Shown one piece after another: positions 2,742 to 45,015 of a stretch of DNA of 64,000 bases. The notes beneath the pieces are model-generated. The model was not told the origin of the DNA and made no database searches. It worked only from the letters and a program-made list of their open reading frames with translations. The stretch comes from Mizuhopecten yessoensis (Eukaryota). A program made the translations under genes and the position numbers. Within the stretch, counting starts at the first letter, position 1. Every line of letters starts with the position of its first letter. The stretch is from contig NW_018404696.1 of assembly GCF_002113885.1 (NCBI RefSeq), positions 284,651 to 348,650 on the forward strand, given 5' to 3'.

Positions 2742-2746
2742 GTAGA

Positions 2747-7932: not shown

Positions 7933-8076
7933 GTCAGCAACTTTGTTAATATGTTAATGAATATAAGAAATTTTATGATAAAAAAATTGATGAACTGACT
8001 AGAAACCATTTCTATTCTGAAATTCTGAGACCTGTAATGTGTTATGTCGTGTCTCCAATGTACGTTCTGTTTACAG

Positions 8077-8229
8077 GATGTTTTTGATGAGGTCCTGAAG
8101 AGGAAGGCGGCTCTGGACCACGTCAAGGACAGGACAGATGCTGTATCACAGAGGAGCTCTGATCCACGGGTGTCAAACAACATGATGCTACTCTCGGCAA
8201 AGTACCAAGGACTTGTGTCTGCCGCCAAG
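8077..8229 (+). CDS. SYNE1: Nesprin-like exon F (51 aa, DVFDEVLKRK...VSAAK)
   Basis: tacag|GAT and AAG|gtctgt; phase 0. Confidence 0.85.
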
Positions 8230-8470
8230 GTCTGTATTGGTGTTAGGAATGGGTTATATAGCTGAACTGTAACATCTATGTTTTAAGTTTGTCAGGCCTA
8301 GCTTTGGTTGGATGTTTAATCTCCTGTTCAAGGTAAAATTGATACAGTAAGAAATATTTGCAGATGTAACAGTATTTGAGAATAAATTGAATGTTTTCCC
8401 ATTAAAAGATAAATCTCACTGATGTATAACAGGAATACGTAGTCAACATGTTTGTCAATCGTCTCAACAG

Positions 8471-8635
8471 GGAATGGTACATAGACTGTCAGAGAACGCC
8501 AAAGACCACAAAAGTTACAACACAGCCTTCGACGAGGCTGCTGATTGGCTGTCAGAAGTTGATGAGCGTGTCACTGTATGTAACGACACGTCAGGTGACT
8601 GGCATGCCGTTCAGGATCGAATGGATGATATCAAG
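8471..8635 (+). CDS. SYNE1: Nesprin-like exon G (55 aa, GMVHRLSENAKDHKSYNTAFDEAADWLSEV...MDDIK); this frame is absent from the ORF track
   Basis: aacag|GGA and AAG|gtagaa; hand translation is open and has the AADWL spectrin motif. Confidence 0.87.
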
Positions 8636-9350
8636 GTAGAATTACCTCACTGACTTAATATAAATTATTAGAACTTTTGGTCCTTTATAAGAAAAATAAA
8701 TTTATTGATTTTAGAACAAATTATCTGTTTAAAATGGAGGTCTTACGACTAGTCTAGTACTGAGATAATAAGCAAATTTAATGTTCTGCAAAGGCTAATA
8801 TCCCACACTTTTGGAGAAAACAGGTGATCTTAAATTGGGTGTCGGTATGTCAGACTTGGTTTCTGAGATATAACCTCTCTAAAATTGGTTCAATTTCAAC
8901 CAAATTGGGTCTGCACATTCACATTGACAAATAAGTGTCAAGTTTGATTGCTATTTTAATAATGAGGCTACCAACGTACGATTAGTTTATTGTCTCCCAT
9001 TCAATAACGGACCTAAATATGATGATGGGGACTGTGGGAAATCCTACGTCCAAACAAAGTGTTAAGTGGAGTCCTGGGTTACCCAGCAGACAGATTCCTC
9101 GAGAAATACACGCGTCCAACTGTAAATAGAGTAATTGATGGACAAAGATGACCCATGATAATGTCCAGCTGGGATTTACAGCTTTAATCAAAATATCAGA
9201 AGAAGAAACAAAGAGTCTGAGATAAAATTAGAAATGCAGTACACAGTTGTTTGGTTGGTAAAAATAACAAATTATAAAAACTTGATATGGATGATGATTA
9301 TACATAATGTTTCTATATTGATGATCTGTCTACTGAGTAACTGTTGTATG

Positions 9351-9798: not shown

Positions 9799-10338
9799 GT
9801 GAGTATTGCAAAATACATAAATATAGTAAAATACTGGTGTGGTGAATTTCCCAACAAACTGTTTACTTTGTCCTGAACAAAATATTGTCACATTTTACTT
9901 ACATGTTAAGTCCTCTATAGAGTTCCTTGTAAACATGTTTTACTATAGAGATTTTAAATTTAAAACCAACTACAATTTATCTAAATTCGTGAAGATAGTC
10001 TGTCTGCAATACGGGAGTAGTAAATTGTATATTTTATTATTTTGTTGAAGTTAACAAACTATGAGTGGTAGTCCCAATGAACCAATAATCAAGTTGGCGT
10101 GCTTCCACTGTATAGTCTCTTACCTTATACACTTACACTTAGGTAGAATATTTTGATTACAAAATTATCAATTTCATAAGATTTTGAAATACAAATCTGG
10201 TAAAGCATGCATTTACATTCCTGGAGTGTGCTATTTTATACCAGTAGATCATGACCCCGTTATATAACATGACAACAAAAGTTTGAGCGTATAAAATTGT
10301 ACAAGATGAACAGTGTGTGATAATGTTTGTATTGCCAG

Positions 10339-10491
10339 CTGGTGATGAGTGATGTTGAAAACCACAACCGCCTCGTCAATGAGTTAGCAGAACGTGTTGC
10401 TAATCTAGAGGCTCTGAGTGAGAACCAGGAGGTGGCTGATACCCTGGCTAACGTTCGCGACCGATACGACAGAGTCCACACCCGAGTACAG
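10339..10491 (+). CDS. SYNE1: Nesprin-like exon I (51 aa, LVMSDVENHN...HTRVQ)
   Basis: gccag|CTG and CAG|gtaggg; phase 0. Confidence 0.86.
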
Positions 10492-10800
10492 GTAGGGCTA
10501 ACCCCTCCTTCCCCTATCATTGCCTGATAATGACGGGTATAAAACCTGCTCTTGTTGCAGGGAATGTTCCGTGTGTCAACTATTTCTCTAAAATGTACAA
10601 GTTTCCATTACCATCAGTGCCTACATCTGTGGTGTGTTAAAGATGTTTGCCATGAAATGAATAGTGTATTTCAAATATCCTTGGGAAATTATCTGGTACC
10701 TAAATCTGACTTGAGATGAGGAATAATTAGGTGATAATAAAACGTTTATAGGGATTTGTTGAGTGTACCACAGAGATGATCATTGTGTTTACATTGACAG

Positions 10801-10968
10801 GAGATTGTGGCCCATCTGGAGCAAGCTTACCACGATCACCTCGACTTCCACGAGGCTCAGCAGGACAGCGAGAAATGGCTGCTACAGACGTCATTCAAAC
10901 TGATGTCCCACAACTCCCTCAATGTCAGCACCATGGAACTTACACAGCGACAAATCGACAAACACCGG
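10801..10968 (+). CDS. SYNE1: Nesprin-like exon J (56 aa, EIVAHLEQAY...IDKHR)
   Basis: gacag|GAG and CGG|gtaagt; phase 0; EKWLLQTSFKLMSHNSL. Confidence 0.88.
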
Positions 10969-11167
10969 GTAAGTTATTATTATTATCATCAATGCTTAAC
11001 GACCCATCAACACAGGATAGGTCATTAGGGCCAACAACTGGTTGAACCACTGGGTAAGGTTTCTAATAACACTCTTGCCGAGTCACACAAAAAACTTTTT
11101 CCGTATTTGAAAGTGATAATTATTTTTTCATACTAATGTTTATAATTTGGTTGTGTTCATATCCCAG

Positions 11168-11344
11168 GGCCTGATCAAGGATATAGAGACATACAGGTCA
11201 ACACTGGACGAGGTGTCCAACCGGGGTCGTAATCTGGTCCAGGACAATGTCCGAGTGCCTAAGATGGCACAACAGGTCCAGTCACAGATGCAGAATTTGG
11301 AGGAAAGTTATCTCAACTTACAAACAACAGCCGAGCAGATCAGG
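11168..11344 (+). CDS. SYNE1: Nesprin-like exon K (59 aa, GLIKDIETYR...AEQIR)
   Basis: cccag|GGC and AGG|gtgagt; phase 0. Confidence 0.87.
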
Positions 11345-15820: not shown

Positions 15821-16244
15821 ATCAAAGGATCTTTATGAGACCTATAAAAGACAATATTTAAATTCTTTGCTCTCCACCTCCTTACAGGTACTACCACCTA
15901 TGCTAGAAATCCAAAATGGGAGTCTTGTACATTAACTTCCACCTAGCAATGTTGTGGTATATGCCACCATGGTGTATAAGAATTGCAGAAATATATGCAA
16001 AATGCTTCAAATGTTTAATTCTGATATATAAGAGGTTCTCTCAAACAGATTAATTATCATTAGGGCCAGGGGTATTTTTAACAAAAGGAACATACATATT
16101 TAATTTGAGAAGGATCCCTCCAATACTTTCAGAGATAATAAACCCTACTATAAAAATCCAAGATGGATGTTGGTCAGCCTTTTTTCAGTCTCAAAAGTAA
16201 ACATTTGTATGCCTATTGATCTGCAGTTTTCATTGATAGTGATT

Positions 16245-18450
16245 GGTATACAGGCCATCAATAAGTACTATATTACACTGGTATGCAGGCCATCAAAAGG
16301 CACTGGTATACAAGCCATCAATTAGTACCATATTACACTGGTATACAGGCCATCAATTAGTATCATAATTATTACACTGGTATACAGGCCATCAATTAGT
16401 ACCATATTACACTGGTTTAAAGGCCATCAATTAGTACCATATTACACTGGTATACAGGCTATCAATTAGTATCATATTACACTGGTATACAGGCCATCAA
16501 TTAGTACCATATTCCACTGGTTTAAAGGCCATCAATTAGTACCATATTACACTGGTATACAGGCCATCAATCAGTATCATATCATACTGGTATACAGGCT
16601 ATCACTTAGTATCATATTACACTGGTATACAGGCCATCAATTAGTACCATATTACACTGGTATACAGGCCATCAATCAGTATCATATTACACTGGTATAC
16701 AGGCTATCACTTAGTACCATAATACACTGGTATACAGACCATCAATTAGTACCATATTACACTGGTATACAGGCTATCATTTAGTACCATAATACACTGG
16801 TATACAGACCAATTAGTACCATATTACACTGGTATACAGGCCATCAATTAGTACTGTATTTCACTAGTATATATGCCATCAATTAGTACCATATTGCACT
16901 GGTATACAGGTCATAAGTTAGTATCTTATTACATTGGTATACAGGTCATTAATTAATATATTATTACATTGGTATACAGGCCATCAATTAGTACCATATT
17001 ACATTGGTATACATGCCATCAATTAGTACCATTATACACTGGTATACTGGCCATCACTTAGTATCATATTACACTGGTATACAGGCCATCAATTAGTACC
17101 ATAATACACTGGTATACACACCATCAATTAGTACCATATTACACTGGTTTAAAGGCCATCAATTAGTATCCTATTATACTGGTATACAGGCTATCAATTA
17201 GTATCATATTACACTGGTATACAGGCCATCAATTAACATCATATCACACTGGTATACATGCCATCAATTAACATCATATCACACTGGTATACATGCCATC
17301 AAATAGTACTATATTACACTGGTATGCAGGCCATCAAAAGGCACTGGTATATACAGGCCATCAATTAGTACCATATTTCACAAGTATATAAGCCATCAAT
17401 AAGTATCATAATTCTTACACTGGTATACAGGCCAACAGTTAATACCATATTACACTGGTATACAGGCCAACAGTTAATACCATATTACACTGGTATACAT
17501 GTCATTAGTTAGTATTTTATTACATTGGTATACAGGTCATTAATTAGTATCTTATTACATTGGTATACAGGTTATCAATTAGTACCATATTACACTGGTA
17601 TAAAGGCAATCAATTAGTACCATATTTCACTAGAATACAGATCACCAATTAGTACCATATTACACTGGTATACAGGTCATCAAATTGTACCATATTACAC
17701 TGGTATATAGGCCAACAAATAATACCATATTACACTGGTATACAGGTCATCAATTAGTACCATATTACACTGGTGTACAGACCATCAAATAATACCATAT
17801 TGATTCTTCTGACTGACCATCAAATAATACCATATTACATTGGTATACAGGTCATCAAATTGTACCATATTACACTGGTATACAGGTCATCAATTAGTAC
17901 CATATTACACTGGTATACAGACCATCAAATAATACCATATTACACTGGTATACAGGCCATCAATTAGTTTCATATTTCACTGGTTTACAGACCATCAATT
18001 AATACCATATTACTTTGGTATAAAGGCCATCAATTAATACCATATTACACTGGTATAAAGGCCAACAGCTAGTACCATAATACACTGGTATACAGGCCAA
18101 CAGCTAGTCCCATATTACACTGGTTTAAAGGCAATCGATTAGTTCCATATTACACTGGTTTAAAGGCTTTTGATTAGTTCCATATTACACTGGTTTAAAG
18201 GCTATCAATAAGTACCATATTACGCTGGTATACAGGCCATCAAATAATACCAAATTACACAGGTATACAGGTAATCAATTAGTACCATATTACACAGGCA
18301 TACAGGCAATCAATTATAACCATATTACACTGGTATACAGGTCATCAATTAGTACCATATTACACTGGTTTTAAGGCCATTAATTAGTATCATATAACAC
18401 TGATATACAGGTCATCAGTTAGTGCCATCTACCAGTCAACAGGTCATCAA
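16245..18450. repeat. 35-bp minisatellite (ACTGGTATACAGGCCATCAATTAGTACCATATTAC)n
   Basis: About 60 diverged copies. Confidence 0.96.
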
Positions 18451-18575: not shown

Positions 18576-18737
18576 AATCGACTTGGTGATGTCATGCAGC
18601 GCTGGCAGGACTACAAGGATCTACTTGACAAAAATGACCATTACCTTAATGAAGAATTCCCTCGTTGGCTTGGAGACTGTGATGCTCAGGTGCCTGATAA
18701 CCTACAGGTTGCTCAGAACAAACTTGACAACATAAGG
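18576..18737 (+). CDS. SYNE1: Nesprin-like exon L (54 aa, NRLGDVMQRW...LDNIR)
   Basis: cacag|AAT and AGG|gtaagt; phase 0; FPRWL motif. Confidence 0.85.
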
Positions 18738-19301
18738 GTAAGTTGTAATTCCCTTGAAGTCAAGAAGGCACAGAGTTTCTGTCATGAATGATTCTAAATT
18801 TGTTGTAAAATAGACATTTTTGATATACATTTATTTTATTAACTGGTAATTTTGTAGATTGCTCTATTTCTGTCAATATAGACCTTCTATTTTACTCTCT
18901 TAGTTTGTGGCCTCTAAAGTTAAGGGGTATGGATGGTATCTGAGTCCTGTTTAACTCCAGTGACCAAAGATACAGGTTAAATGTTATAGCTGGAAAATGT
19001 TGTAACAAGTCACTTAGAATTCAGGTGAATTGTTCACAGTGGTTTGTACTCTTAACTCTTCATTACCATCTATTGATTCAACGAACTTGGCCTTACATCC
19101 CCTTTCCTATGTTCCATATTATTGCCAGATTGTGTGAAGAATTTGTATAACATAAAAGAGCTTAAACAAAAACTAGTAAAATCATCAAGTTAGGTTTTCC
19201 TGTAACTAGTGATAAAAAAAGTTGTCAAGCATTATTCAGAATTGAAGTTCATTCTACCAGACATGGCACACACCCTATGGTGTATCCTTGCCAGTAGTAA
19301 T

Positions 19302-20777: not shown

Positions 20778-20948
20778 ACAATGTGGGAGAAATTGAATGG
20801 GTTGAAACAAGAAATGGCGAACGCATGTCATCGTTGTGACAATCTGGGTAGCATGGACAGTCTTGACCAGAGTGACAAGGAGCTGCCATCGCCAATGTCA
20901 CAGCTTGCTGATCAAGTTAACTCTGAACTCAAAGAAGCCATATCACAG
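20778..20948 (+). CDS. SYNE1: Nesprin-like exon M (57 aa, TMWEKLNGLK...EAISQ)
   Basis: tatag|ACA and CAG|gtaatt; phase 0. Confidence 0.82.
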
Positions 20949-21111
20949 GTAATTGAATTTCTTTTGTCATCTATGTATCCTAAAATTGATAAAAATTACA
21001 TTCATCACTTGAAAAAATACCCATGGAACCGTTCACAGTACAAAAGCCATACCTGTATGGCTAATGAGATAAGTGATAGCAATATTTCATGGCCACTCCA
21101 CTGTGCTCCAG

Positions 21112-21288
21112 GTTGAGAAGCGGATGGAAAACGTGAGGGATACGATTGGTCAGTGGGAATCTGTTGATCGTCAGAGGACTGACCTAAGGAACTGGCTGCA
21201 CAGCAAACAGGAGAACCTCCAGGAAATGGAGCAGCGACCTGCTAAACTTCATGCTGAGGCAGCCGAGCTGGAAATCGCAAATTTACAG
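21112..21288 (+). CDS. SYNE1: Nesprin-like exon N (59 aa, VEKRMENVRD...IANLQ)
   Basis: tccag|GTT and CAG|gtaaaa; phase 0; LRNWL motif. Confidence 0.87.
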
Positions 21289-22096
21289 GTAAAAGCTTTC
21301 AAGATCATGATATATATATATTAGAAATTTGGGGCAAGTCTTCAGAGAAATTTATGTTGTAATACTGACATAATCATCAATTTTTTCAATTTTTTATTTT
21401 TTTTGTCCACCCCCATACTTAGCATAAAATTCACATTTATGATACAACAAAAATAACAGGAGTTTAGATTCATAGCATTTATTCATACAACAATGTTTGG
21501 CAACCTAAGGGTACTCACACATGCTGCACATAACCTAATCAGGAACTTTGAAGTCTCGACAAAGTGACATAGGCCTGGCCAAAAACGTAATTACTAAGGG
21601 GGCAGAAGCTGAGTTACACTGGAGTGATAGGCCTCTGATGGTGTGTTCAGTGTTCTTAGAGGACCAACCTTAGATGAGAAGGTGACTTGAATCGGAAAGT
21701 TTGGGGGTATGTCTGGACAGCTCACTGACAGTTGTAAAACTGATGCAGCTAGTGTATCAAACCTTAGATTCGGGAGTCATGTGACGATTACTTATTGCTT
21801 GTGTTGAGGTATGACGTAGCATTTGTCAGTTGGACATATAGGGCTTCATGTTTGTTACAGGATACTGCTGGACAAAACCCTTAACAAAGGGATGTTATCT
21901 TGTTTTGGTCTTTACAAACACCCACACTGTAGATAGAGGTGGGGAAACCATTAAGTACCAGACTGTGTTGTGTCTTAATTCTAACTCACATAAGAAATAA
22001 AGATGAGGAGTTTTGTTTAAATGTTGTTTCACAAACCACGTTACTTCAGTATTGATTGTTGTCGTGTTGTAAATAGACCTGTTTTTATGATTACAG

Positions 22097-22402
22097 GCTT
22101 TGAGAGAAGAGGTCCAAGGGCGAGGACCAGCCATTGATGCGTTCCTGAACCGGTACCGTGAACTGACCCAGCACAACCCTGCCCTTGTGGACCCAGTGAT
22201 GCGTGCAGTGCGTGAGGACTGGGAAGAACTTCTCGGGCAAATTGAAAATCTTCTAGAGGATAGGGAACAAGCTCTCCAGTGTAACCGCGACCTCCAGGAG
22301 CAGCAGACTGACATGGACCAGGATCTGGCCAATTTTGTGGACGAGCTTGAGAAGATAGAAGCTGCAGACGTAGCTGTCGTGGAAAAGTCTGCCCAGCTAA
22401 AG
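22097..22402 (+). CDS. SYNE1: Nesprin-like exon O (102 aa, ALREEVQGRG...SAQLK)
   Basis: tacag|GCT and AAG|gtatgt; phase 0; EDWEEL helix C. Confidence 0.87.
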
Positions 22403-25400
22403 GTATGTGGACGTAGTCTAGACAGCGTCAGGCAAGGCCTCATTCTGTATCAACTCCAAAAAACAAGCCAAAAGTAATGTCGGAAAGAGGGGGAAATCAT
22501 AACTGCATAAATGGGTCAGTTTTCTGTATCTTCCTAGGGTATTATGAATGTTTTTTGTACATAGTTATGTCCTCTTGTAGGTATTTATTTTAAAAAGATA
22601 ATGAACCAGATGTTGGAAGGAAGCTTGAGTTAAGCATTTTGTTTTAATTCTCACTGTTTAAGGAAATGATAGAGTGTGATGCCTTGCCCAGCTGATTTTA
22701 CTTAAGAGCTGATGTGTGTATCTAAACTGTGTGACAATTGCTGCATTACTAACGGTTGTCTCCTTAACATTGAAATCGTAACAAAATTGCTGTGGGTATA
22801 CCTTTTTATACTAAACATGAAAAATCACACAATCTTTTTATCAAGAAATGCCTTTTATTTGTTAATATGATTACACTGAAAACACGACATAAAGATATGA
22901 TAAAGGCACTATCATAAGTGTGATTTCAATAAAGGTTGCCATCGTCTAGTTTACGGCTAGTTATCTCCCTTGTTTTAAAGACGGCGGCAGACATTGGCAG
23001 ATGTTAAATACAGTTTACATACATACATTTTATACTGTGTTTGCTAATAAGAGTTATGTTTATATAGTTGCCCACTTGCTTTGCATGCCTGTTGAGATCA
23101 ATGTCCCGGTACAACAGTACCTACAGCCCATACAAATAAACCCTGCTCCACACTTGGACGGGTTATGGATCAAAATTGTCGATCAGTTTAAGCACATGTC
23201 ACCATTTTGTTTATATTTCCTTTATCATCTTGAACTACGCTCTCATTGAGGCTATCAATGACTGTCTCCTAGTCGTTGGAGTGTTGAGAGAACATGTGTA
23301 TCACTGTTGTAAATCACTTAATATTATCTCAATGACTTTTCACCTCCGCAATTCAAATCCAGTGCTCACTCTTCACCCCATGCTCGTAGTTAAATCTCTA
23401 CAGTAAAAATTCTGTTGTTTTAATTTTCATAAACTGTTGTAGCTTTATTCATTAATATGAAGCTTCTGAACACAGATACAAGTCAATATAAAACTTGTGC
23501 AGTCTTCCTTCGATGCTATAAAAAGCTTTTGAATACAAGATTTACAGTCTATTCCATACCCGTATAAAACATATAGATTTATATTCATCAGAGTGTAAAC
23601 CCTAGCTACATATACCTTGTGTTTGTCGGTTGGCTGAGAAGAAAGGCTGGGTAACACGGGCCGGGGTAAGCCATTGATTTAGGGGCGTAATCAATAACAC
23701 TGACTGACAGAACCTAGGGTGTCGGACGGATTGTATATTGGAACGGCAAACATAAAATGTACACGCTTTTATCTCGCTGATTACGGCTGGCAGCTACCCA
23801 GGTAAATACACATGAGACTCCGCAGACTAGCTGGTTGGTTGGTTTGACCATAAGACAGTTACCTTACCCCGATAGAGAGGCAGGTTTAAGCATGCGATGG
23901 GATTAAATGGTATGGCTTTACAACAATGGGAAAGTTGTTGGGAGTTAAAGGTCTGATTATACTGGTATGTAGTGTATCAGGAGGCCGCATCATCCTTGTT
24001 AAAGCAGTGGCATGGTTATACTAGGGAAATAATGAACCATTCTTGTCTGTGAACAATCTAAAGTAATAGAGATCAGTGTGTGTGGATGACTGGCTGGCTA
24101 GATCTCTACAACACGTTCATTCAGAATTGAGTAAGTATGATCACAACAAACTGAAGTGGTAAATGATAAATGAGCATGTTCTCCTGGCTCTGTCTCTGAC
24201 TTCCCATTATCTCTGAGCTTTAATTTCTATCCAGCCTTACCTGAGCTTTGAATACACGATCAATTCTCCTGTCGACTGATCGTCAGCTGCTGCAGAATTT
24301 ATTTATACACCTTTTGTATTATATCAAGTATCTCACTGTTTATTTACCTCTTTTATTTACCTGCTTTAATCTACTACCTGTTATCTTGTTAGCTCACTAA
24401 CTCTGTCAAGTAGAGGTAAAATCCTCAGCCCTGTGTTTAGGTAGGTCAGATCGTTAAATCTATTATAATTTGGCGGGAAAGGGATTACCAGTAAATTTGA
24501 AACTTGTTCCAACATGTCCAACAAACTTGTATATTGGATCAATACGGAGACAAATAATTCATTTTAGTTTGCTTGAATGCCTGTCAGCTATGGAGGTCTA
24601 CCCTTAGGTACGTTAACGTGAACTGGACAGGTGTATCACAGGGAAAGTCTGTTAGATTTCTCTCCTACTCATGTCAGCAATCTGTGGCCATAACATTGGC
24701 ACTTGGTGTGTAGCACTAGCCTTAAGTAGGTGAGTTACCACTGCCTCTATCCTCTATCATTGCCTATCTGCTTACACTTGTTCCTCTTTCTTCCTTTTCC
24801 TGGTGTGGTTGTAGAAATCTATTTATGGTGACCTGTGTATATTGAGGTAAGTGGTCGTTAAGCATTAAAAAAAAAAAAAAAAAAAATGAAAAAAAAAACC
24901 TAAAATACACATTTTTTCTTTCCCTATGCAGTAAATACCATTGGTGAAACCTTTTTGAATTCCAATGTTTAAATCTTCCTGCACTCGGTGCCTCTTTACG
25001 CAGCATTCCAAATGCAAAGCAAGTCAGCAACTGTCCTAGTACATTAAGATAGAGGTGTAGCTAGCTAGTTGGGGGTATTTTGTGTGATTTGGTAGGGCTC
25101 TGCATCCATGGTGCTTGCTCTGTGTGTTATTCAATGTTATCTTTTCTTCCTTATAACTTTACATCTCATTTATTTACCACTTCCTGTTGACTTTGTTGGA
25201 GGGACAATGAGTAAGATAAAAATAAAGGAATTTTATTTGAAAATATCTATGTTCCATTTTCTTGTCCATTTATATTTTTGACTAATGGCTTGGTAATCAT
25301 AATTTTAATGAAATATTTTGTTGAATGGTTTGGTGCTAATTCTGCTTTTATTGACTGTTTGAGGGTGTCTAAAGTGGACTGACTTTTCAGCGGTTTTTGA

Positions 25401-25465
25401 CACTAATTCCTCCTTTGTTGATTATATAAGATATAATGTCATTCCTCCAATCATCTACCCTGCAG

Positions 25466-27190
25466 AGACGCAAGTGCCGTTCCACACAAACACCAGACCC
25501 ATCTGCCAGGTCATCTGGGCGACGCAGCAATCTCCTTGGATCACGCCACAGTGATGACGACGATGATGATGACGATGGTGATGACAGTGTGTTTAGATAT
25601 CCTCCCTCAGTACGTGGCGGCCGTGGCAGTACGCCCAGTAAACGTAAAATAAGGCGTGGTCTAGGGAGCCAGCCCCACACTCCCCATTCAGCACGTCGCT
25701 CACATAGCAGCAGACCTGATCATGATCTGAAGAAAGGTGGCGCTGCTGCAGGATGTGAGTCAGAGAGCGAAGAGTCTGGATATGGTGAGACGTACTATAC
25801 CATGCATGCTTCGAGTTTTGATACAGTCGACGTTTTTGGTTCTCAGACTTTAGATACAATGAGAGGTACACCCAGCCAGTTGTTGCTAGAAGCTGTGTCG
25901 GACGCCGAGTCCACTGGTAGTTATATAATCGGAGATTTTCCACAAATCAACCCAGATGATCTCCAGGATGCGGCATGTCAGACACCTGCCCATGCCCGCA
26001 CACAGACCCCCAGCAACATGTGGGGCGGTAGCTCGCGTAACATCAGTACACAAGTGCCACGCACCATGCAAACCCAAACTGAAAGTCTGCCACAGAACAC
26101 ATCAATGCAGACATCCAACCTGTCTCTTAACTCTGTCGGTAATCAAACCCGGAGGTCCCTTGGAGGCTCCAGGACAGACTTGTTAAAGAGTATACTAATG
26201 GACGTTAAAACCCTCAAGGCCCAGCGGGGTATTGGCTCAGACACCCCAACAGATGATGCACGGTCTGTAGCCTCTAATGGGAGCCTGCCGCGAGAAATGC
26301 TTCAATCTCTGAGCTCTGATGTACGGACACTAAAACATGCAGGCAGTCATGGAGTTGCTGCCACACAAACTCTCTCAGAGCAGGGAACGCAAACTGGAAT
26401 GAAAATATTTCCAGAAGGTGATCCCGTAAGGAACTCACGTCATGGACGTCTTCGTGATCTTATGTCTGATGTTAAAGACATGAAGGATGGGAATGACACT
26501 CGGTCGCAGCACAGTCTTGACATGCCATACGAGAGGAGCAGACCAATGTCAAGTGTAAGTGGGCTTCGTAACTCCCCCGTACGATTTGCCACTCCTGTTC
26601 CTCCACCTTCAAGACAAAATCGTGCTCTACCACCTCATCCTCCTCAAGAGAATGGGTTTGATAATTATGCACCCCCTGCAGGTTACTACCAGCCTATGCC
26701 AGTGCCAATGCCCAACCAGCCAATGGTAAATCTGAATTCCACAGCCCCAGCCACATTTGGACCGATGCCACACATGAACGGTCATCCTCCATACCCTACA
26801 GGAAGAGTCACCCAGGATGATCTTAATGCGATTAGTGACCGAGTTAATCGCTTACGTAACTACCAGATCCCTCCCCGTCGACAGTTACCTCCTCCTCCAC
26901 CCCCTCAGTATGTTGTGCCAGTGTTCTCAGCCCCACCAAGACGTCGTGTACGCATCCAAGAATTCCCCCAATCTTTCGATGACCAACAGGATGGATTTAT
27001 GTCCGACGAAAGTGAATATGATGGAGGTCGTGCTCCGAGGAGGAGGGGTCATGGGAGAGGTCATGGAGTACAGGATCGCTATGGACTAGATGGAGTACTC
27101 TCTGAGGCCAGTGAGGCCGCACGAGAACTCAAAATTCTTTCAAAGAAAATGAGAGATTCTCTTAGAGATGAACTCCTTAACGGTCCGTAA
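25466..27190 (+). CDS. Putative alternative terminal exon: 574-aa disordered Ser/Pro/Arg-rich tail with multiple TQT/QT motifs and a C-terminal amphipathic helix
   Basis: 1.75-kb non-repetitive ORF, GC-richer than its flanks; strong acceptor tcattcctccaatcatctaccctgcag|AGA in phase 0, matching the exon O donor; ends TAA at 27188-27190. Coding status is well supported; linkage to nesprin is inferred. Confidence 0.75.
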   Translation, partial: RRKCRSTQTPDPSARSSGRRSNLLGSRHSDDDDDDDDGDDSVFRYPPSVRGGRGSTPSKRKIRRGLGSQPHTPHSARRSHSSRPDHDLKKGGAAAGCESESEESGYGETYYTMHASSFDTVDVFGSQTLDTMRGTPSQLLLEAVSDAESTGSYIIGDFPQINPDDLQDAACQTPAHARTQTPSNMWGGSSRNISTQVPRTMQTQTESLPQNTSMQTSNLSLNSVGNQTRRSLGGSRTDLLKSILMDVKTLKAQRGIGSDTPTDDARSVASNGSLPREMLQSLSSDVRTLKHAGSHGVAATQTLSEQGTQTGMKIFPEGDPVRNSRHGRLRDLMSDVKDMKDGNDTRSQHSLDMPYERSRPMSSVSGLRNSPVRFATPVPPPSRQNRALPPHPPQENGFDNYAPPAGYYQPMPVPMPNQPMVNLNSTAPATFGPMPHMNGHPPYPTGRVTQDDLNAISDRVNRLRNYQIPPRRQLPPPPPPQYVVPVFSAPPRRRVRIQEFPQSFDDQQDGFMSDESEYDGGRAPRRRGHGRGHGVQDRYGLDGVLSEASEAARELKILSKKMRDSLRDELLNGP

Positions 27191-28002
27191 TACAAAATGT
27201 GTCTTGGCTCTCATCCAAGATTATTCCCCCAATCTTGTGATGTTGAACCACTTCATGTTTAGGAACCAAACTTTTACACAAAATGTATGATTTCCCACAT
27301 ATTTGACCATGAGTGTTTGTTGAGTCTGTAAACCATTCCTATAGGATGTACTTTTTTACTTAAATATTTAAATGATAATGAAATCATTTCTAACAACGAT
27401 TATAGATGTATTATACAATAGTTTTCAAGAGAAGGTAATCTTATATAATTTTTAATAAATTTAATGTGTTTTTCGTCCTATTTTTCAAAGTGAACTGTGA
27501 TACCTATTCCACTGTACGCAACAGTTGTGTGAAATACTGTCCAACATAATGTGTATGTGAATGTCAAAATATTTTCATATCATAAGACTTTTATACCAAT
27601 ACAGGTATTTGTTTTTCCACAAGACGCTTATTTTGTACTAGAAAAAACATTGTTCACAGGGTTTTGTGAGAAAACCTCATTGATATCAGTCTCTAACATA
27701 ACAATAGAAGGGAATGAATCCTTTATGTAATTTCGTTTAAAAGGGTTGGTCATTGAGAAAGCCGAAAGGACCCTTTAAATTGTATGCCATGCTTAGTCTG
27801 CTATAGCACACTATATACATTAATTGTGATCACGTCATTTTTACAAGCCTAATGTCATATTTACCATTATGTTTTGAGAAGGTTTGAATTTTATTCTTCA
27901 ATCAACAATTCTTTTTCTTCATTTTTTTCTTTTGTGAAAATATGATTGATTTTGATAAGATTTTAGATATGTGTATTTGATATGAAGGGTGTTTGTGTGA
28001 TA

Positions 28003-31133: not shown

Positions 31134-32667
31134 GTACAGGTCTAATGATGGACATTCATTGAACAGGTCTAATGATGGACATTTATTGAACAGGTCTAAT
31201 GATGAACATTCATTGAACAGGTCTAATGATGGACATTCATTGAACAGGTCTAATGATGGACATTTATTGAACAGGTCTAATGATGGACATTCATTAACAG
31301 GTCTAATGATGGACATTCATTAACAGGTCTAATGATGGACTTTCATTGAACAGGTCTAATGATGGACATTTATTGAACAGGTCTAATGATGGACATTTAT
31401 TGAACAGGTCTTATGATGGACATTTATTGAACAGGTCTAATGATGGACATTCATTGAACAGGTCTAATGATGGACATTTATTGAACAGGTCTAATGATGG
31501 ACATTCATTGAACAGGTCTAATGATGGACATTTATTGAACAGGTCTAATGATGGACATTCATTGAACAGGTCTAATGATGGACATTTATTGAACAGGTCT
31601 AATGATGGACATTCATTGAACAGGTCTAATGATGGACATTTATTGAACAGGTCTAATGATGGACATTCATTGAACAGGTCTAATGATGGACATTTATTGA
31701 ACAGGTCTAATGATGGACATTCATTAACAGGTCTAATGATGGACATTCATTAACAGGTCTAATGATGGACTTTCATTGAACAGGTCTAATGATGGACATT
31801 TATTGAACAGGTCTAATGATGGACATTCATTGAACAGGTCTAATGATGGACATTCATTGAACAGGTCTAATGATGGACATTCATTGAACAGGTCTAATGA
31901 TGGACATTCATTGAACAGGTCTAATGATGGACATTCATTGAACAGGTCTAATGATGGACTTTTATTGAACAGGTCTAATAATGGACATTTATTGAACAGG
32001 TCTTATGATGGACTTTCATTGAACAGGTCTAATGATGGACATTTATTGAACAGATCTTATGATGGACATTCATTGAACAGGTCTAATGATGGACATTCAT
32101 TGAACAGGTCTTATGATGGACATTTATTGGACAGGTCTAATGATGGACATTTATTGTACAGGTCTAATGATGGACATTTATTGAACAGGTCTAATGATGG
32201 ATATCATTGAACAGGTGTAATGATGGACATTCATTGAACAGGTCTAATGATAGACATTTATTAAACAGGTCTAATGATGGACATTCATTGAACAGGTCTA
32301 ATAATGGACATTTATTGAACAGGTCTAATGATGAACATTCATTGAACAGGTCTAATGATGGACATTTATTGAACAGGTCTAATGATGGATATCATTGAAC
32401 AGGTCTAATGATGGACATTCATTGAACAGGTCTAATGATAGACATTTATTGAACAGGTCTAATGATGGACATTCATTGAACAGGTCTAATAATGGACATT
32501 TATTGAACAGGTCTGATGATGGACATTCATTGAACAGGTCTAATGATGGACATTTATTGAACAGGTCTAATGATGGACATTCATTCATATCTTATACATT
32601 AAATCTCCCATTGAACAGGTCTGATGATGGACATTCATTGAACAGGTCTAATGATGGACATTTATTG
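31134..32667. repeat. 27-bp minisatellite (AACAGGTCTAATGATGGACATT(C/T)ATTG)n
   Basis: About 55 near-identical copies. Confidence 0.97.
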
Positions 32668-32984
32668 AGATTAAATTCTCAGGCTAGTTTTTTTTAATGT
32701 TTGCATGACATGAACCAACTTCAAAGTTAGTATGACAGAAAGTTATAGGAAGTTAATAGTCACCTGTATGAACATTTTTTTCGACGTGAACCTTTGAAAT
32801 TGTTTTTGGATTTCATTGCATCAAAGATTTTGTGAATTGATTCACAAAACAGTTTCTGCAAAGTACAAACTTTGTTATAAAATTAATAGATTAATACAAT
32901 GGAACCATATCATTATATTTGCTTTGTATAGTAAAAAAATGGCTACACGCTTCATATGTTTACACCTCTCAGTTTACATCAAAG

Positions 32985-34888
32985 TATCATATCTCACATC
33001 ATATCTTATGCATCAAATCTCACATCATATCTTATACATCAAATCTCACAGCATATCTTATGCATCAAATCTCACATCATATCTTATACATCAAATCTCA
33101 CAGCATATCTTATGCATCAAATCTCACAGCATAACTTATACATTAAATCTTACATTATATCTTATACATTAAATCTTACATCATATCTTATACATTAAAT
33201 CTCCCATTACAATTATATATCTCAGTTTACATCAATTAAAGTATATCTCACAGCATATCTTATGCATCAAATCTCACAGCATATCTTATGTATCAAATCT
33301 CACAGCATATCTTATGCATCAAATCTCACATCATATCTTATACATTAAATCTCCCATTACAATTATATATCTCAGTTTCCACCAATTAAAGTATATCTCA
33401 CAGCATATCTTATGCATCGAATATCACAGCATATATTATACATCAAGTCTCACAGCATATCTTATGCATCGAATATCACAGCATATCTTATACCTCAAAT
33501 CTCACAGCATAACTTATACATTAAATCTTACATCATATCTTATACAGTAAATCTCCCATTACAATTATATATCTCAGTTTACATCAATTAAAGTATATCT
33601 CACAGCATATCTTAAACATCAAATCTCACAGCGTATCTTATGCATCAAATATCACAGCATATCTTATACATCAAATCTCACAGCATATCTTATGCATCAA
33701 ATATCACAGCATATATTATACATCAAATCTCACAGCATATCTTATACATCAAATCTCACAGCATATCTGATACGTCAAATCTCACAGCATATCTTATACA
33801 TCAAATCTCACAGCATATCTTATACATCAAATCTCACAGCATATCTTATACATCAAATCTCACAGCATATCTTATACATCAAATCTCACAGCATATCTTA
33901 TACATCAAATCTCACAGCATATCTTATACATCAAATCTCACAGCATATCTTATACATCAAATCTCACAGCATATCTTATACATCAAATCTCACAGCATAT
34001 CTTATACATCAAATCTCACAGCATATCTTATACATCAAATCTCACAGCATATCTTATACATCAAATCTCACAGCATATCTTATACATCAAATCTCACAGC
34101 ATATCTTATACATCAAATCTCACAGCATATCTTATACATCAAATCTCACAGCATATCTTATACATCAAATCTCACAGCATATCTTATACATCAGATCTCA
34201 CAGCATATCTTATATACATCAGATCTCACAGCATATCTTATATACATCAGATCTCACAGCATATCTTATATACATCAGATCTCACAGTATATCTTATATA
34301 CATCAGATCTCACAGTATATCTGATATACATCAGATCTCACAGTATATCCTATACATCAGATCTCACAGCATATCTTATACATCAGATCTCACAGCATAT
34401 CTTATATACATCAGATCTCACAGCATATCTGATATACATCAGATCTCACAGTATATCTTCTATACATCAGATCTCACAGCATATCTTATACATCAGATCT
34501 CACAGCATATCTTATATACATCAGATCTCACAGCATATCTGATATACATCAGATCTCACAGTATATCTTATATACATCAGATCTCACAGCATATCTTATA
34601 CATCAGATCTCACAGCATATCTTATATACATCAGATCTCACAGCATATCTTATATACATCAGATCTCACAGCATATCTTATATACATCAGATCTCACAGC
34701 ATATCTGATATACATCAGATCTCACAGTATATCTTATATACATCAGATCTCACAGCATATCTTATACATCAGATCTCACAGCATATCTTATATACATCAG
34801 ATCTCACAGCATATCTTATATACATCAGATCTCACAGCATATCTTATATACATCAGATCTCACAGCATATCTGATATACATCAGATCT
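32985..34888. repeat. 26-bp minisatellite (CATCAAATCTCACAGCATATCTTATA)n grading into a 28-bp variant
   Basis: Unit changes to CATCAGATCTCACAGCATATCTTATATA after about 34190. Confidence 0.97.
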
Positions 34889-35282
34889 CCCGTTACAATC
34901 TCTCAGCTGCCTCAAGAATAACAGGGAAATCAAAGGTTGATTTGATATTGTTCCGTATTTGATCAAACTGATTTGGCAATATCAAATATGGTTTTCACAT
35001 AGAAAATGATAAAACGATGGATTTCACATAGAAAATAATAAAAATGTGTGTTAAAATGTTGCTGCAATTATTTATTTTCCATCACAACCATCCTATTTTT
35101 TAGTTTGCACACACTAACATTATCTAGGTCCAGCACGAATCTAATCTAACAAAATTCACATGTGTTTGTACAGTATCATGTATCAGGGTGTATACTTAGT
35201 GTGGAATTAACTACAAACAGTTGACATTGTTATTGAACAGAATATGTGATCACCCACTTTTTGAAAATGAAACTTTAAGCAA

Positions 35283-36525
35283 GGGTCTGTACAAGGCTAC
35301 TCTAGACCTGTTGCTGACGGGTACAATCTTCTGTCAGGTGACTGTACCAGATCAGGCTACTCTCGACCTGTTGCTGACAGGTACAATCTTCTGTCAGGTG
35401 ACTGTACCAGATCAGGCTACTCTAGACCTGTTGCTGACAGGTACAATCTTCTGTCAGAGTCTGTACAAGGCTACTCTAGACCTGTTGCTGACGGGTACAA
35501 TCTTCTGTCAGGTGACTGTACCAGATCAGGCTACTCTCGACCTGTTGCTGACAGGTACAATCTTCTGTCAGGTGACTGTACCAGATCAGGCTACTCTAGA
35601 CCTGTTGCTGACAGGTACAATCTTCTGTCAGAGTCTGTACAAGGCTACTCTAGACCTGTTGCTGACAGGTACAATCTTCTGTCAGAGTCTGTACCAGGCT
35701 ACTCTAGACCTGTTGCTGACAGGTACAATCTTCTGTCAGAGTCTGTACCAGGCTACTCTAGACCTGTTGCTGACAGGTACAATCTTCTGTCAGAGTCTGT
35801 ACCAGGCTACTCTAGACCTGTTGCTGACAGGTACAATCTTCTGTCAGAGTCTGTACCAGGCTACTCTAGACCTGTTGCTGACAGGTACAATCTTCTGTCA
35901 GAGTCTGTACCAGGCTACTCTAGACCTGTTGCTGACAGGTACAATCTTCTGTCAGAGTCTGTACCAGGCTACTCTAGACCTGTTGCTGACAGGTACAATC
36001 TTCTGTCAGAGTCTGTACCAGGCTACTCTAGACCTGTTGCTGACAGGTACAATCTTCTGTCAGAGTCTGTACCAGGCTACTCTAGACCTGTTGCTGACAG
36101 GTACAATCTTCTGTCAGAGTCTGTACCAGGCTACTCTAGACCTGTTGCTGACAGGTACAATCTTCTGTCAGGGTCTGTACCAGGCTACTCTAGACCTGTT
36201 GCTGACAGGTACAATCTTCTGTCAGGGGTCTGTACCAGGATACTCTAGACCTATGTTGCTGACAGGTACAATCTTCTGTCAGGGGTCTGTACCAGGCTAC
36301 TCTAGACCTGTTGCTGACAGGTACAATCTCCTGTCAGTGGTCTGTACCAGGCTAATCTAGACCTGTTGATGACAGGTACAATCTTCTGTCAGGGGTCTGT
36401 ACCAGGCTAATCTAGACCTGTTGCTGACAGGTACAATCTTCTGTCCGGGATCTGTACCAGATCAGGCTACTCTAAACGGGTTGCTGACAGGTACAGTCTC
36501 CTGTCAGGGGTCTGTACCAGATCGG
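35283..36525. repeat. 54-bp (with 60-bp variants) minisatellite containing a CTGACAG...CTGTCAG inverted repeat
   Basis: (CTGTACCAGGCTACTCTAGACCTGTTGCTGACAGGTACAATCTTCTGTCAGAGT)n. Confidence 0.97.
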
Positions 36526-36802: not shown

Positions 36803-37250
36803 TTCTTCTTCTTCTTCTGGTTCTTCTAATCGCAACTTGTCCGGGCCATAACTTTTAAACCGTTAAAGATATCTTGATGGAACTTTAGGTATGAATGCAT
36901 CGCCCACAGAAGGTGTGCAGTGCACTAGAATTAGGTCACTGTGACTTTCAACTCAAGGCAAAGGTCAAATAGGTGCAACATTTTCAGAAAATTCTTGTCC
37001 AGCCCTTAGATATTAAACCGTTAAAGATATCTTGATCAAACTTGAAGTATACTTGCATCACCCACAGAAGGTGTGCAGTGCACTGGAATTAGGTCACGTG
37101 CTTCACTCTGTACTAAATTATGTCCCTTTGTTTAATTTTAATACCGAAGGTTTTCCAGATCATAAGTTCCATGTTATTTCACCTACGTTGACCAAACTTA
37201 CCATATTTATGTATCTTGGGAAGGCGAAATCTCACGCACTCAAATCAGGT
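36803..37250 (+). mobile_element. Non-autonomous interspersed element remnant with a (CTT)n head and two internal related units
   Basis: cttcttcttcttctgg...cttgtccgggccataact; duplicated aaaccgttaaagatatcttgat...cccacagaaggtgtgcagtgcact. Confidence 0.45.
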
Positions 37251-37965
37251 TAAATTTGCTGTCACAGACAGGTTATATTTGGTATCACAGACATATAATA
37301 TTTGCTATCACAGACAGGTGATTTTTGCTATCAAAGACAGGTTAATATTTGCTGTCAAAGACAGGTAAATATTTGCTGTCACAGACAGATTATATTTGCT
37401 ATCACAGACAGGTTATATTTGTTATCACAGACAGGCAATATATGCTATCACAGACAGGTTATATTTGTTATCACATACAGATAATATATGCTATCACAGA
37501 CAGGTAATATTTAGTATTACAAACAGGTAATATTTGCTATCATAGACAGGTTATATTTGCTATTACAGACAAGTGATATTTGCTTTTACAGGCAGGTAAT
37601 ATTTGCTATTACAGACAGGCAATATATTCTATTACAGACAGGCAATATATGCTATCACAGACAGGCAATATATGCTATCACAGACAGGCAATATATGCTA
37701 TCACAGACAAGCAATATATGTTATCACAGACAGGCAATATATTCTATTACAGACAGGTAATATTTTCTATTACAGACAGGTAATATATGCTATCAAAGAC
37801 AGGCAATATATGCTATTACAGACAGGCAATATCTGCTATCACAGACAGGCAATATCTGCTATTACAGACAGGCAATATATGTTATTACAGACAGGCAATA
37901 TATGCTATCACAGACAGGCAATATATGCTATCACAGACAGGCAATATATGCTATTACAGACAGGT
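37250..37965. repeat. 23-bp minisatellite (TATCACAGACAGGCAATATATGC)n
   Basis: About 30 copies. Confidence 0.95.
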
Positions 37966-38364: not shown

Positions 38365-39200
38365 TATGTATAAATATATATATATATAGATACAGAATAT
38401 ATATATATAGATAGAGAATGTATAATAAATGTATATATATAATAAATGTATAGAATATATATATATATATTTACAGAATATATAATGAATGTACATATAG
38501 ATACAGAATATAGTCCGCCTGAAGAAGCCCTAGAACTTAGAAGGCAGAAAGGCCTAAGAGGCGATCTGAAAAAATTATGTTTTTATTCTATATTTTCCTT
38601 CGCAAGGACTTAATTATNNNNNNNNNNNNNNNNNNNNNNNNNNNNNNNNNNNNNNNNNNNNNNNNNNNNNNNNNNNNNNNNNNNNNNNNNNNNNNNNNNN
38701 NNNNNNNNNNNNNNNNNNNNNNNNNNNNNNNNNNNNNNNNNNNNNNNNNNNNNNNNNNNNNNNNNNNNNNTATAGATACAGAATATATAATAAATGTACA
38801 TATAGGCACAGAATATATAATAAATGTATGTTTAGGTACAGAATATATATAAAATATATATTAAGGTACAAAATATATAAATAATGTATATTTAGGTACA
38901 GAATACATAAAAATTGTATATTTAAGTATGAAATATATAATAAAAGTATGTTTAGATACAAAATAAATAATAATTGTATATTTAGGTACGGAATATATTT
39001 AAAATTTATACTAAGGTATATAATATATAATAAACGTATAATAAGGTACAGAATATATAATATATGTATATTTAGGTACAGAATATATATTATATGTATA
39101 TTTAGGTACAGAATATATATTATATGTATATTTAGGAACAAAATATATAATAAATGTATATTTAGGAACAGAAGATGTAGGTAAATATTGTGTATAGGTA
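38365..39200. repeat. AT-rich minisatellite of about 30 bp (TATTTAGGTACAGAATATATAATAAATGTA)n spanning an assembly gap
   Basis: Degenerate copies on both sides of the N run. Confidence 0.8.
38618..38770. other. Assembly gap (153 N)
   Basis: Run of n characters. Confidence 0.99.
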
Positions 39201-42337: not shown

Positions 42338-43432
42338 TGCAGAAGGTGTGATACACAGATGGTGTGATACACAGAAGGTTTAATACACAGGTGTGATACA
42401 CAGATGATGTGATACAGAGATGGTGTGATACACAGATGATGTGATACACAGATGGTATGATACACAGAAGGTGTGATACACAGATTGTGTGATACACAGA
42501 AGGTGTGATACACAGATTGTGTGATACACAGATGATGTGATACACAGATGGTGTGATACGCACAAGGTGTGATACACAGATGGTGTGATAAACAGATAGT
42601 GTGATACACAGAAGGTGTGATACACCATCTGTGTATCACACCTTCTGTGATACACAGATGGTGTGATAAACAGATAGTGTGATACACAGAAGGTGTGATA
42701 CACATATGGTGTGATAAACAGATGGTGTGATAAACAGAAGGTGTGATACACAGAAGGTGTGATACACAGATTGTGTGATACACAGAAGGTGTGATACACC
42801 ATCTGTGTATCACACCTTCTGTGATACACAGATGGTGTGATAAACAGATAGTGTGATACACAGAAGGTGTGATACACAGAAGGTGTGATACACCATCTGT
42901 GTATCACACCTTCTGTGATACACAGATGGTGTGATAAACAGATGGTGTGATACACCTTCTGTGTATCACACCATCTGTTTATCACACCATCTGTGTATCA
43001 CAGAAGGTGTGATACACAGATGGTGTGATACACAGATGATGTGATACACAGAAGGTGTGATACACAGATGGTGTGATAAACAGATGGTGTGATACACAGA
43101 AGGTGTGATACACAGATGGTGTGATTCACAGAAGGTGTAATACACATGTGTGATACACAGATGGAGTGATACACAGAAGGTGGGATACACAGATGGTGTG
43201 AGACACAGATGGTGTGATACCCAGAAGGTGTGATACACAGATTGTGTGATACACAGATGATGGGATACAAAGATGGTGTGATACACAGTAGGTGTGATAC
43301 ACAGATTGTGTGATACACAGATGGGGTGATACACAGAAGGTGTAATACACATGTGTGATACACAGATGGCGTGATACACAGAAGGTGTGATACACAGATG
43401 GTGTGATACACAGAAGGTGTGATACACAGATT
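42338..43432. repeat. 16-bp minisatellite (GTGTGATACACAGA(T/A)G)n with internal inverted monomers
   Basis: Direct reading; inverted blocks near 42621, 42796, 42889 and 42951-43000. Confidence 0.96.
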
Positions 43433-43919: not shown

Positions 43920-45015
43920 AAGCTGAGTGGTTTTATGGTGAGCACATGTAGGGATCTTGTAATTAGCTACGTGGTTATATGTTGGGCACAGAGGGGTTAG
44001 GTAATGAGCAAAGTGGTTTAATATTGAGCACATAGGGGTTTTGTTATGAACAAAGCTGTTTAGTGTTGAGCACATAAGGGTTTTGTAATGAGCTAAGATG
44101 TTTTATGTTGAGCACAGAGAGGTTTTGTAATGAGCTAAGTGGTTTAATGTTGAGTACAGAGGGGTTTTGTAATGAGCTAAGTGGTTTAATGATGAGCACA
44201 GAGGGGTTTGGTAATGAGCTAAGAGGTTAACTGTTGAGCACAGATGGGTTTTTTAATGAGCAAAGTGGTTTAATATTGAGCACATAGGGGTTTTGTTATG
44301 AACAAAGCTGTTTAGTGTTGAGCACATAAGGGTTTTGTAATGAGCTAAGTGGTTTAATGTTGAGCACAGAGGGGTTTGGTAATGAGCTAAGTGGTTTAAT
44401 GTTGAGCACAGATGGGTTTTGTAATGAGTTAAGTGGTTAAATGTTGAGCACAGATGGGTTTTGTAATGAGCAAAGTGGTTTAATATTGAGCACATAGGGT
44501 TTTGTTATGAACAAAGCTGTTTAGTGTTGAGCACATAAGGGTTTTGTAATGAGCTAAGATGTTTTATGTTGAGCACAGAGGGGTTTGGTAATGAGCTAAG
44601 TGGTTTAATGTTGAGCACAGAGGTGTTTTGGTAATGAGCTAAGTGGTTTAATGTTGAGCACAGAGGGATTTGGTAATGAGCTAAGAGGTTAACTGTTGAG
44701 CACATAAGGGTTTTGTAATGAGCTAAGAGGATAACTGTTGAGCACATAAGGGTTTTGTAATGAGCTAAGTGGTTTTTTGTCGAGCCCAAAAGAGATTGGT
44801 AATGAGCTAAGGGGTTTAATGTTGAGCGCAGAGGTGTTTTGGTAATGAGCTATGTGGTTTAATGTTGAGCACAGGGGTTTGGTAATGAGCTAAGTGGTTT
44901 AATGTTGAGCACAGACGGGTTTGGTAATGAGCTAAGTGGTTTTTTGTCGAGCCCAAAAGAGTTTGGTAATGAGCTAAGTGTTTTTTTGTCGAGCACAGAA
45001 GAGTTTTGTAATGAG
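43920..45015. repeat. 42-bp minisatellite (GTAATGAGCTAAGTGGTTTAATGTTGAGCACAGAGGGGTTTG)n
   Basis: About 26 copies. Confidence 0.95.

Follow-up and report, generated by a model that had tools for sequence, protein, structure and literature searches.

A conserved array of LC8-type QT motifs in a putative alternative terminal exon of a molluscan nesprin-like gene

A 64,000-nucleotide stretch of the Mizuhopecten yessoensis genome (contig NW_018404696.1; here the window, in whose coordinates all positions are given) contains spectrin-repeat exons of a nesprin-like gene and, downstream of them, a tail exon at 25466-27190 on the forward (+) strand, the strand of every exon, motif, helix and signal described below. 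The tail exon consists of one long open frame of 574 codons closed by a stop at 27188-27190, and its residues are numbered from the exon start (25466). Judged from the sequence and its relatives, it is best read as an alternative terminal exon of a giant molluscan nesprin-1-like (SYNE) gene. The tail it encodes carries nine motifs of the type bound by the light chain LC8, and the QT anchors of these motifs are the best-conserved residues of the tail's disordered part. The overall explanation we favour, with a confidence moderately above even, is of a phase-0-spliced, stop-terminated nesprin 3' exon that lacks KASH and carries a conserved LC8-type array which would ladder the tails together. 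The motifs, their enrichment, the predicted disorder, the selective conservation, the exon structure and the restriction to molluscs are observed; LC8 binding, its stoichiometry and its dimerising or rigidifying outcome are inferred.

The nine QT motifs and their conservation

The nine motif strings quoted in the initial annotation of this DNA are all found in the translation of 25466-27187, with anchor Gln residues at 8, 172, 180, 196, 204, 215, 227, 301 and 309, and the dense packing described there for most of them is confirmed, eight of the nine lying within residues 167-311 (144 aa). They are grouped as S1 at the exon start, a cluster of S2-S7, counted as five to six sites, spanning 63 residues, and the twin S8/S9 (ATQT-x5-TQT). 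Conservation was counted for each site in about 40 homologues, the denominators that follow being the sequences that cover the site in question. S1 (KCRSTQTP, residues 3-10, 25472-25495) is the LC8-type motif of best quality, with R at -3 and P at +2, and its TQT is kept in 21/21 covering homologues. The cluster opens with S2 (QDAACQTP, residues 167-174, 25964-25987), in which the -1 residue is C, S or T and QT is present in 38/38 homologues (TQT in 8), followed eight residues on by its twin S3 (AHARTQTP, residues 175-182, 25988-26011; Q[TV] 37/38, TQT 35/38). S4 (RNISTQVP, residues 191-198, 26036-26059) has good flanks and sits in an insertion relative to most homologues. S5 (RTMQTQTE, residues 199-206, 26060-26083) is a canonical TQT with M at -3 and E at +2 (Q[TV] 35/37, TQT 34/37), S6 (QNTSMQTS, residues 210-217, 26093-26116) has a hydrophobic -1 residue (M/L/V/I) and keeps QT in 19 of the 24 covering sequences, and the non-canonical S7 (NSVGNQTR, residues 222-229, 26129-26152) has N or A at -1 and a basic +2, with QT in 33/39. 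The flanks of S8 (GVAATQTL, residues 296-303, 26351-26374) are poor, with A at -3 and a hydrophobic +2, and its TQT is kept in 37/40 homologues, that of its twin S9 (SEQGTQTG, residues 304-311, 26375-26398) in 38/40. A tenth QT, in GSQTL at residues 125-129, lies outside the quoted list and is not conserved.

Could so many motifs simply arise by chance, or from composition, in a low-complexity region that contains Thr and Gln? The tail is indeed disordered and rich in Ser, Pro and Arg, but T makes up only 6.3% and Q 5.7% of its residues, and it holds five TQT, six TQ[TV] and ten QT where 200,000 composition-preserving shuffles gave means of 0.13, 0.22 and 2.07. The TQT and TQ[TV] counts were matched by 0/200,000 shuffles (P<5e-6 for TQT), and the QT count has P=1.5e-5. 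Full-length homologues each hold 4-6 TQT against 0.13-0.45 expected, and the motif sites align column by column across bivalves and gastropods. A chance origin is refuted by the shuffles, the anchor conservation and the homologue counts together, and we assign it a probability close to nil.

The anchors are conserved selectively. In alignment A1, T300 Q301 T302 and T308 Q309 T310 supply six of just 24 invariant columns, and Q172 T173, T179 Q180 T181 and Q204 T205 are conserved at 90% or above. When a 42-sequence alignment was thinned to 31 non-redundant rows, the mean top-residue frequency of the QT anchors was 0.72, compared with 0.44 for their flanks (Mann-Whitney P=6e-6) and 0.41 for all other Q/T residues (P=1e-5). 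The initial annotation had named this comparison as a check on its proposal; as the anchors stand at 0.72 and the flanks at 0.44, the view that the QT motifs are no more conserved than their surroundings fails. The proposed array of nine is upheld for seven, which are conserved, whereas S4 is confined to the window sequence and two relatives (P0005 and P0006, where TQV or TQM is aligned with it) and S6 is deleted in a Dreissena-like clade. The Mytilus clade has lost S7. Such turnover of sites while the array persists is typical of multivalent linear-motif arrays.

An oyster model (P0028, Magallana gigas K1QUR5) runs S1 (…KRKCRSTQTPRD) straight into the second of the helices described below, omitting S2-S7 and the first helix (compare 25466-26290 of the window). 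The omission reflects either an error of the gene model or an internal splice, which would alter LC8 valency.

The pattern of constraint bears also on a reading of the motifs as an SQ/TQ cluster domain for ATM/ATR-type kinases and not an LC8 array. The five S/T-Q in residues 126-225 are above the defining density (at least 3 per 100), and ASCIZ shows that the two readings can coincide. However, conservation of the +1 Thr (0.77) equals that of the Q and is no lower than that of the -1 residue (0.63), and QT is retained while -1 varies (C/S/T, M/L/V/I or N/A), S6 and S7 keeping it next to the non-phosphorylatable M/L/V/I and N/A. Outside a helix, S/T-Q without a following T is poorly kept (0.07 for SQP, 0.40 for the Q of SQH), and a cytoplasmic spectrin-repeat scaffold would be an unlikely PIKK substrate. 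The cluster reading was rejected on these grounds, the density being reached but the constraint falling on Q and the +1 Thr with a -1 residue that is often not Ser/Thr, and we hold it to be highly improbable. The QT array fits an LC8 reading for the same reasons, that is because the +1 Thr is at least as conserved as -1 and because sites with a non-phosphorylatable -1 residue retain QT.

LC8 motifs are expected in disordered sequence that can adopt a beta-strand, and AlphaFold2 run on a 24-sequence family alignment predicts coil with pLDDT <50 for residues 1-35, 168-235 and 293-318, covering all nine sites, in agreement with the disorder assumed at the outset. No site has an internal Pro from -4 to +1.

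Fit to LC8 recognition and a proposed mechanism

The published rules for LC8 describe a TQT-like anchor with buried Thr at -1 and +1, in which -1 is mid-sized and H-bonding or hydrophobic, Gln stands at 0 and Thr or Val at +1, together with a large or basic residue at -3, a polar one at -4 and P, D or E, not a hydrophobic residue, at +2 (PMC6607443). The tail conforms to the anchor rule with TQT in S1, S3, S5, S8 and S9 and TQV in S4. At -3, -4 and +2 the flanks are favourable in S1 (R, C, P), S4 (I, N, P) and S5 (M, T, E), and partly so in S2, S3 and S9, S2 and S3 having Ala at -3; S8 fails (A at -3, V at -4, L at +2). Among the verified binders of the same study (PMC6607443), ...TRSTQTT is similar to S1 and ...DISTQTS to S4, and ...DKQTQTP is likewise one of those that resemble S1, S4 or S5.

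Several points weigh against LC8 binding by the array as a whole. Three sites, S2 (CQT, with S/T in relatives), S6 (MQT) and S7 (NQT/AQT), are without the canonical Thr at -1. About half of the TQT peptides assayed in isolation fail to bind LC8, and S8 (A at -3 and -2, hydrophobic +2) and S9 (G at -2) resemble the weak binders or non-binders ...TATQTT, ...SGTQTV, ...NGTQTP and ...TGTQTN (PMC6607443). Finally, the twins Q172/Q180, Q196/Q204 and Q301/Q309 have an 8-residue spacing, leaving zero linker between the 8-mers, and the shortest linker between LC8 sites that we located in the literature is the 1 residue of human ASCIZ. In favour of LC8 in spite of the weak sites, the lowest-scoring known LC8 binders belong to multivalent clients, ASCIZ has weak LC8 sites that are rescued by neighbouring sites, KANK1 takes at least 15 LC8 dimers via sites that are undetectable singly, and S8 and S9 are invariant, which has to be accounted for in some way.

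That the best-conserved sites score poorly by the published flank rules, in a tail with several further conserved blocks to which no function is assigned, would suit a different partner of the QT motifs or a modification of them (e.g. Thr phosphorylation or O-GlcNAc), with the likeness to LC8 sites being coincidental. Against this, the residues at -3 and +2 of S1, S4 and S5 are of the kind that LC8 prefers, and multivalent LC8 clients, KANK1 and ASCIZ among them, typically include weak sites; we consider another partner unlikely. Nor do we know of anything else that reads repeated [T/x]QT triplets in disordered sequence.

A literature search found no report of LC8 motifs or an LC8 interaction for any nesprin/SYNE, and no SYNE in the LC8Pred supplements. 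Going by its motifs, the tail is a credible candidate for a multivalent LC8 client, in a protein family for which no use of LC8 is known, and its initial interpretation as an LC8 array is partly supported.

Seven conserved sites on one disordered chain and within cooperative distance place the tail above the threshold for multivalency (at least 3 motifs). The linkers of S5-S6-S7 are 3 and 4 residues long, like the 3-5 residues of the LC8 rods in the Nup159 DID and the KANK1 L2 linker, in which stacked LC8 dimers stiffen consecutive motifs into a structural rod. The tail differs from these in that its cluster is shorter (about 60 residues) and has zero-linker twins, and in that its anchors are mostly canonical TQT whereas the KANK1 sites are non-canonical. 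Its likeness to ASCIZ/ATMIN lies in the many TQT-type motifs of mixed quality, the long disordered region and the mixed linkers (down to the single residue of the human protein). ASCIZ is, however, a zinc-finger transcription factor that senses LC8 concentration, while the tail places its array, with short helices interspersed, at the C-terminal end of a spectrin-repeat scaffold, and there is no sequence homology between the two. The members of a twin may not be co-occupied and may offer alternative registers rather than two sites. Given the zero-linker twins, 3-6 LC8 dimers per pair of tails are therefore expected, not nine, and the usable valency is probably 3-6.

By analogy with these clients we think a three-step mechanism of LC8 bridging, S2-S7 stiffening and helix pairing the most likely one, again at rather better than even confidence. 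Each LC8 homodimer would bind one motif strand from each of two tails, and several such dimers would ladder the two tails, parallel and in register, dimerising the nesprin isoform. The S2-S7 segment would thereby be stiffened into a short bead-like rod, and three short helices (H1-H3) would be brought near one another, their local concentration being raised, so that they could pair. The outcome would be a KASH-less nesprin with a defined dimeric C-terminal end. The helices are H1 (residues 236-254, 26171-26227; block pLDDT up to 76), in which L240, I243, L244, V247 and K251 are conserved, H2 (residues 276-294, 26291-26347), seen by AlphaFold2 and in the alignment, and H3 (residues 320-340, 26423-26485), seen by AlphaFold2. 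They are the first, second and third copies of one two-heptad amphipathic helix, an LLxxILxDVKxLK mini-zipper, flank the S8/S9 twin and probably constitute a weak self-association element. The combination of LC8 with weak self-association is standard LC8 client logic. Valency could be tuned as individual lineages gain and lose sites, and perhaps also by splicing out S2-S7 internally, as in the oyster model.

LC8 bound to the QT motifs might, in place of dimerising or stiffening the tail, recruit the dynein motor to nesprin and so make it a cargo adaptor. Nesprins and other KASH proteins are known recruiters of dynein and kinesin, and the DLC-1-binding region of Caenorhabditis elegans UNC-83 serves nuclear migration. 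Yet in the dynein-bound LC8 dimer both grooves are filled by the dynein intermediate chains, multivalent LC8 clients work by dimerisation, and 6-8 sites per chain suit a ladder better than a single tether, all of which makes motor recruitment very unlikely. UNC-83 nonetheless sets a precedent for connecting KASH proteins with LC8, being an outer-nuclear-membrane linker-family KASH protein tied to the LC8 light chain (DLC-1). It differs from the mollusc protein in having a KASH domain and in acting with BICD-1/EGAL-1 in dynein regulation, and it is neither a nesprin spectrin-repeat giant nor homologous to the tail.

The tail exon and its place in the gene

A polypyrimidine tract and the acceptor ccctgcag/AGA at 25465/25466 open the tail exon in phase 0, which agrees with the phase 0 of the donor CTAAAG/gtatgt at 22402/22403. 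Joining 22402 to 25466 reads ...QLK/RRKCRSTQTP, as at the junctions of the Mytilus, oyster and gastropod models. Mapping of mollusc models by tblastn, in which exons were searched singly and not as a joined spliced model, gives the exon chain 11171-11344, 18576-18738, 20781-20951, 21109-21291, 22091-22402 and the tail. The spectrin-repeat exon 18576-18738, found with P0002, P0026, P0028 and P0041, has the acceptor cacag/AAT and the donor AGG/gtaagt; the spectrin-repeat exons 20781-20951 and 21109-21291 (the latter with 77% identity to the Mytilus model) have approximate boundaries; and 22091-22402 is the final spectrin-repeat exon ahead of the tail. Further upstream, the exon 9487-9873 matches Pfam PF25034 Spectrin_SYNE1 at 41.8 bits (cut-off 35), and three more exons on the + strand give sub-threshold Spectrin_SYNE1 matches of 24-28 bits.

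Four mollusc models (Mytilus, Magallana, Plakobranchus and the UniParc entry P0041) splice spectrin-repeat exons to the tail. The same order of last spectrin exon, intron of 2.4 to about 17.5 kb and tail exon is found in Plakobranchus (L001), a Logan contig (L002), Dreissena (L003) and Candidula (L004), so that it is common to five loci, the window included. In Dreissena (CM035917.1, 1-21239) the tail open reading frame (ORF) lies within an 8746-residue gene-model span on the same strand, which overruns it on both sides. The homologues all finish within a few residues of one C-terminus, past a conserved amphipathic helix. It is because of the matching phases, the joined models, the conserved exon order, the conserved end and the Dreissena span that we read the tail exon as an alternative terminal exon.

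The evidence on splicing speaks against a separate single-exon gene lying within a nesprin intron, which would allow the LC8 array and not the nesprin isoform. An in-frame ATG does lie at 25436, 10 codons upstream, the Dreissena ORF is annotated separately as the hypothetical protein DPMN_088543, and 23/24 library relatives match the tail region alone, the longest having at most 679 residues. The upstream ATG, however, shifts position and is missing in some homologues, and the residue ahead of the conserved start is nearly always Q, as a CAG acceptor predicts; with donor and acceptor phases that agree, four models that join the exons and an order kept in five loci, a nested gene seems quite unlikely.

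The tail contains no hydrophobic or transmembrane segment, the windows of the terminal helix having at most 11/19 residues from A, I, L, M, F, V, W, C and G, and a transmembrane or KASH-like ending was ruled out by the hydrophobicity of these windows. The proposal of a truncated isoform that ends in this way instead of in KASH finds indirect support in that the stop is conserved, a transmembrane segment is lacking and the Dreissena span extends to 8746 residues; its other half, a KASH exon further on, was not found in the 36.8 kb downstream. Two results tell against the isoform: a scan of the + strand from 27191 to 64000 (36.8 kb) returned no ORF ending in PPPx-stop with a hydrophobic stretch ahead, and the relatives in the databases are without exception free-standing ORFs or short models, none longer than 878 residues. 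No giant tail-bearing isoform was recovered in a profile search of 1.84 billion representatives, and the 10 kb (about 4 kb in the Logan contig) that follow the tail in Dreissena, Plakobranchus, Candidula and the Logan contig share no common exon with the window. A candidate downstream exon, as yet unconfirmed, with good splice signals (boundaries ttttttag/AAC ... ATCAA/gttagt, the acceptor being strong) lies at 63615-63733, 36 kb past the tail exon, where a composition scan able to find every known spectrin exon selects it for its spectrin-repeat-like composition; it has no Pfam match, and no homologue in the fetched flanks of the other loci. It may be the point at which the giant isoform resumes, and the nesprin-like gene probably runs on beyond the window. 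A candidate polyadenylation signal for the tail, AATAAA at 27454-27459, lies 264 nt past the stop, with two more near 28160 and 28708.

The nearest database proteins are molluscan, namely a Mytilus coruscus 'SYNE1', a Plakobranchus 'nesprin-1-like' protein and entries from Dreissena, Magallana, Elysia and Candidula. A profile of 24 sequences set against the 1.84 billion representatives matched just 24 proteins, and every named library relative is from a bivalve or a gastropod. The Pfam search with the window tail gave no family below E=0.1, that with 20 homologues a single chance match in one member, and a PDB sequence search with the tail gave no match at E up to 10. These searches suggest a mollusc-restricted invention, or at the least a tail that has elsewhere diverged past the reach of hidden Markov models.

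Beside the QT sites the tail has further conserved blocks. An acidic Ser/Tyr block, ESESEESGYGETYYTMHASSFD (residues 98-119, 25757-25822), is conserved as strongly as the QT sites, the columns S99-D119 being nearly invariant; it looks like a phospho-regulated docking motif, with an SSFDxV end similar to a LIR-type core. Helix H4 (residues 450-464, 26813-26857) comprises the conserved VTQDDLNAISDR... block, with a block pLDDT of about 92, and the C-terminal amphipathic helix H5 (residues 541-572, 27086-27181; pLDDT about 94, blocks 87-95) is conserved to the stop. The C-terminal third (26813-27181) also has a poly-Pro run with a PPxY-like PPPQY, an SDESEY block and an Arg run, all conserved, and its blocks matched no known domain.

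Some other features of the gene and the window were noted. The composition scan adds spectrin-repeat-like exons, with approximate boundaries, at 4837-5073, 6725-6907, 8038-8262, 8423-8650, 10324-10524 and 10798-11025, six that had fallen outside the list of ORFs of at least 90 aa. At the Dreissena locus the counterparts of the window exons 21109-21291 and 22091-22402 are contiguous. The Mytilus coruscus SYNE1 model (P0002) begins, in residues 1-33, with MGNKSS... and then a polybasic stretch, resembling a myristoylation-plus-basic membrane signal, which may point to an internal promoter and to a short isoform bound to membrane; nothing corresponding to these residues was found in the window. 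The GC content of the window is mostly 31-42%, its coding ORFs are short and interrupted, and there are N stretches at 12307 and 38618-38770. The GC content, the interrupted ORFs and the many minisatellites are marks of eukaryotic genomic DNA. Long minisatellite arrays, with units of 16-54 bp that differ from array to array and up to 78 copies, crowd the introns and the downstream region and give rise to most of the long spurious ORFs. They lie at 1-608, 2744-4604, 16244-18428, 31136-32668, 32986-34889, 35285-36520, 37246-37965, 42340-43431, 43921-45015, 45701-46922, 47281-48215, 56737-57675 and 60135-61204.

Implications for KASH-less nesprins

KASH-less nesprins are found among the variants of vertebrate nesprin-1/2 and as isoforms B, E and F of Drosophila Msp300, and the mollusc tail is like them in its alternative termination, in its unique C-terminus and in pointing to a role away from the LINC complex. 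It differs in that LC8 motifs are unreported in their tails and in being restricted to molluscs. It is possible, if somewhat short of an even chance, that a KASH-less nesprin isoform has arisen in molluscs for which LC8 determines both oligomeric state and stiffness, a ladder of LC8 dimers on S2-S7 and S8/S9 clamping two tails and zipping the three mini-helices; it would be the first LC8-dependent parallel dimer among spectrin-repeat and LINC proteins. As there are no detectable relatives of the tail outside molluscs, the reach of such a finding would be limited. If LC8 binding is true, a nesprin would join the short list of structural proteins, Nup159 and KANK1, that are made into dimeric rods by stacked LC8, and a route would be shown by which a KASH-less nesprin could self-associate. 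The tail also provides a clean evolutionary series for multivalent arrays across bivalves and gastropods, with the gain of S4, the loss of S6 and S7, and the zero-linker twins.

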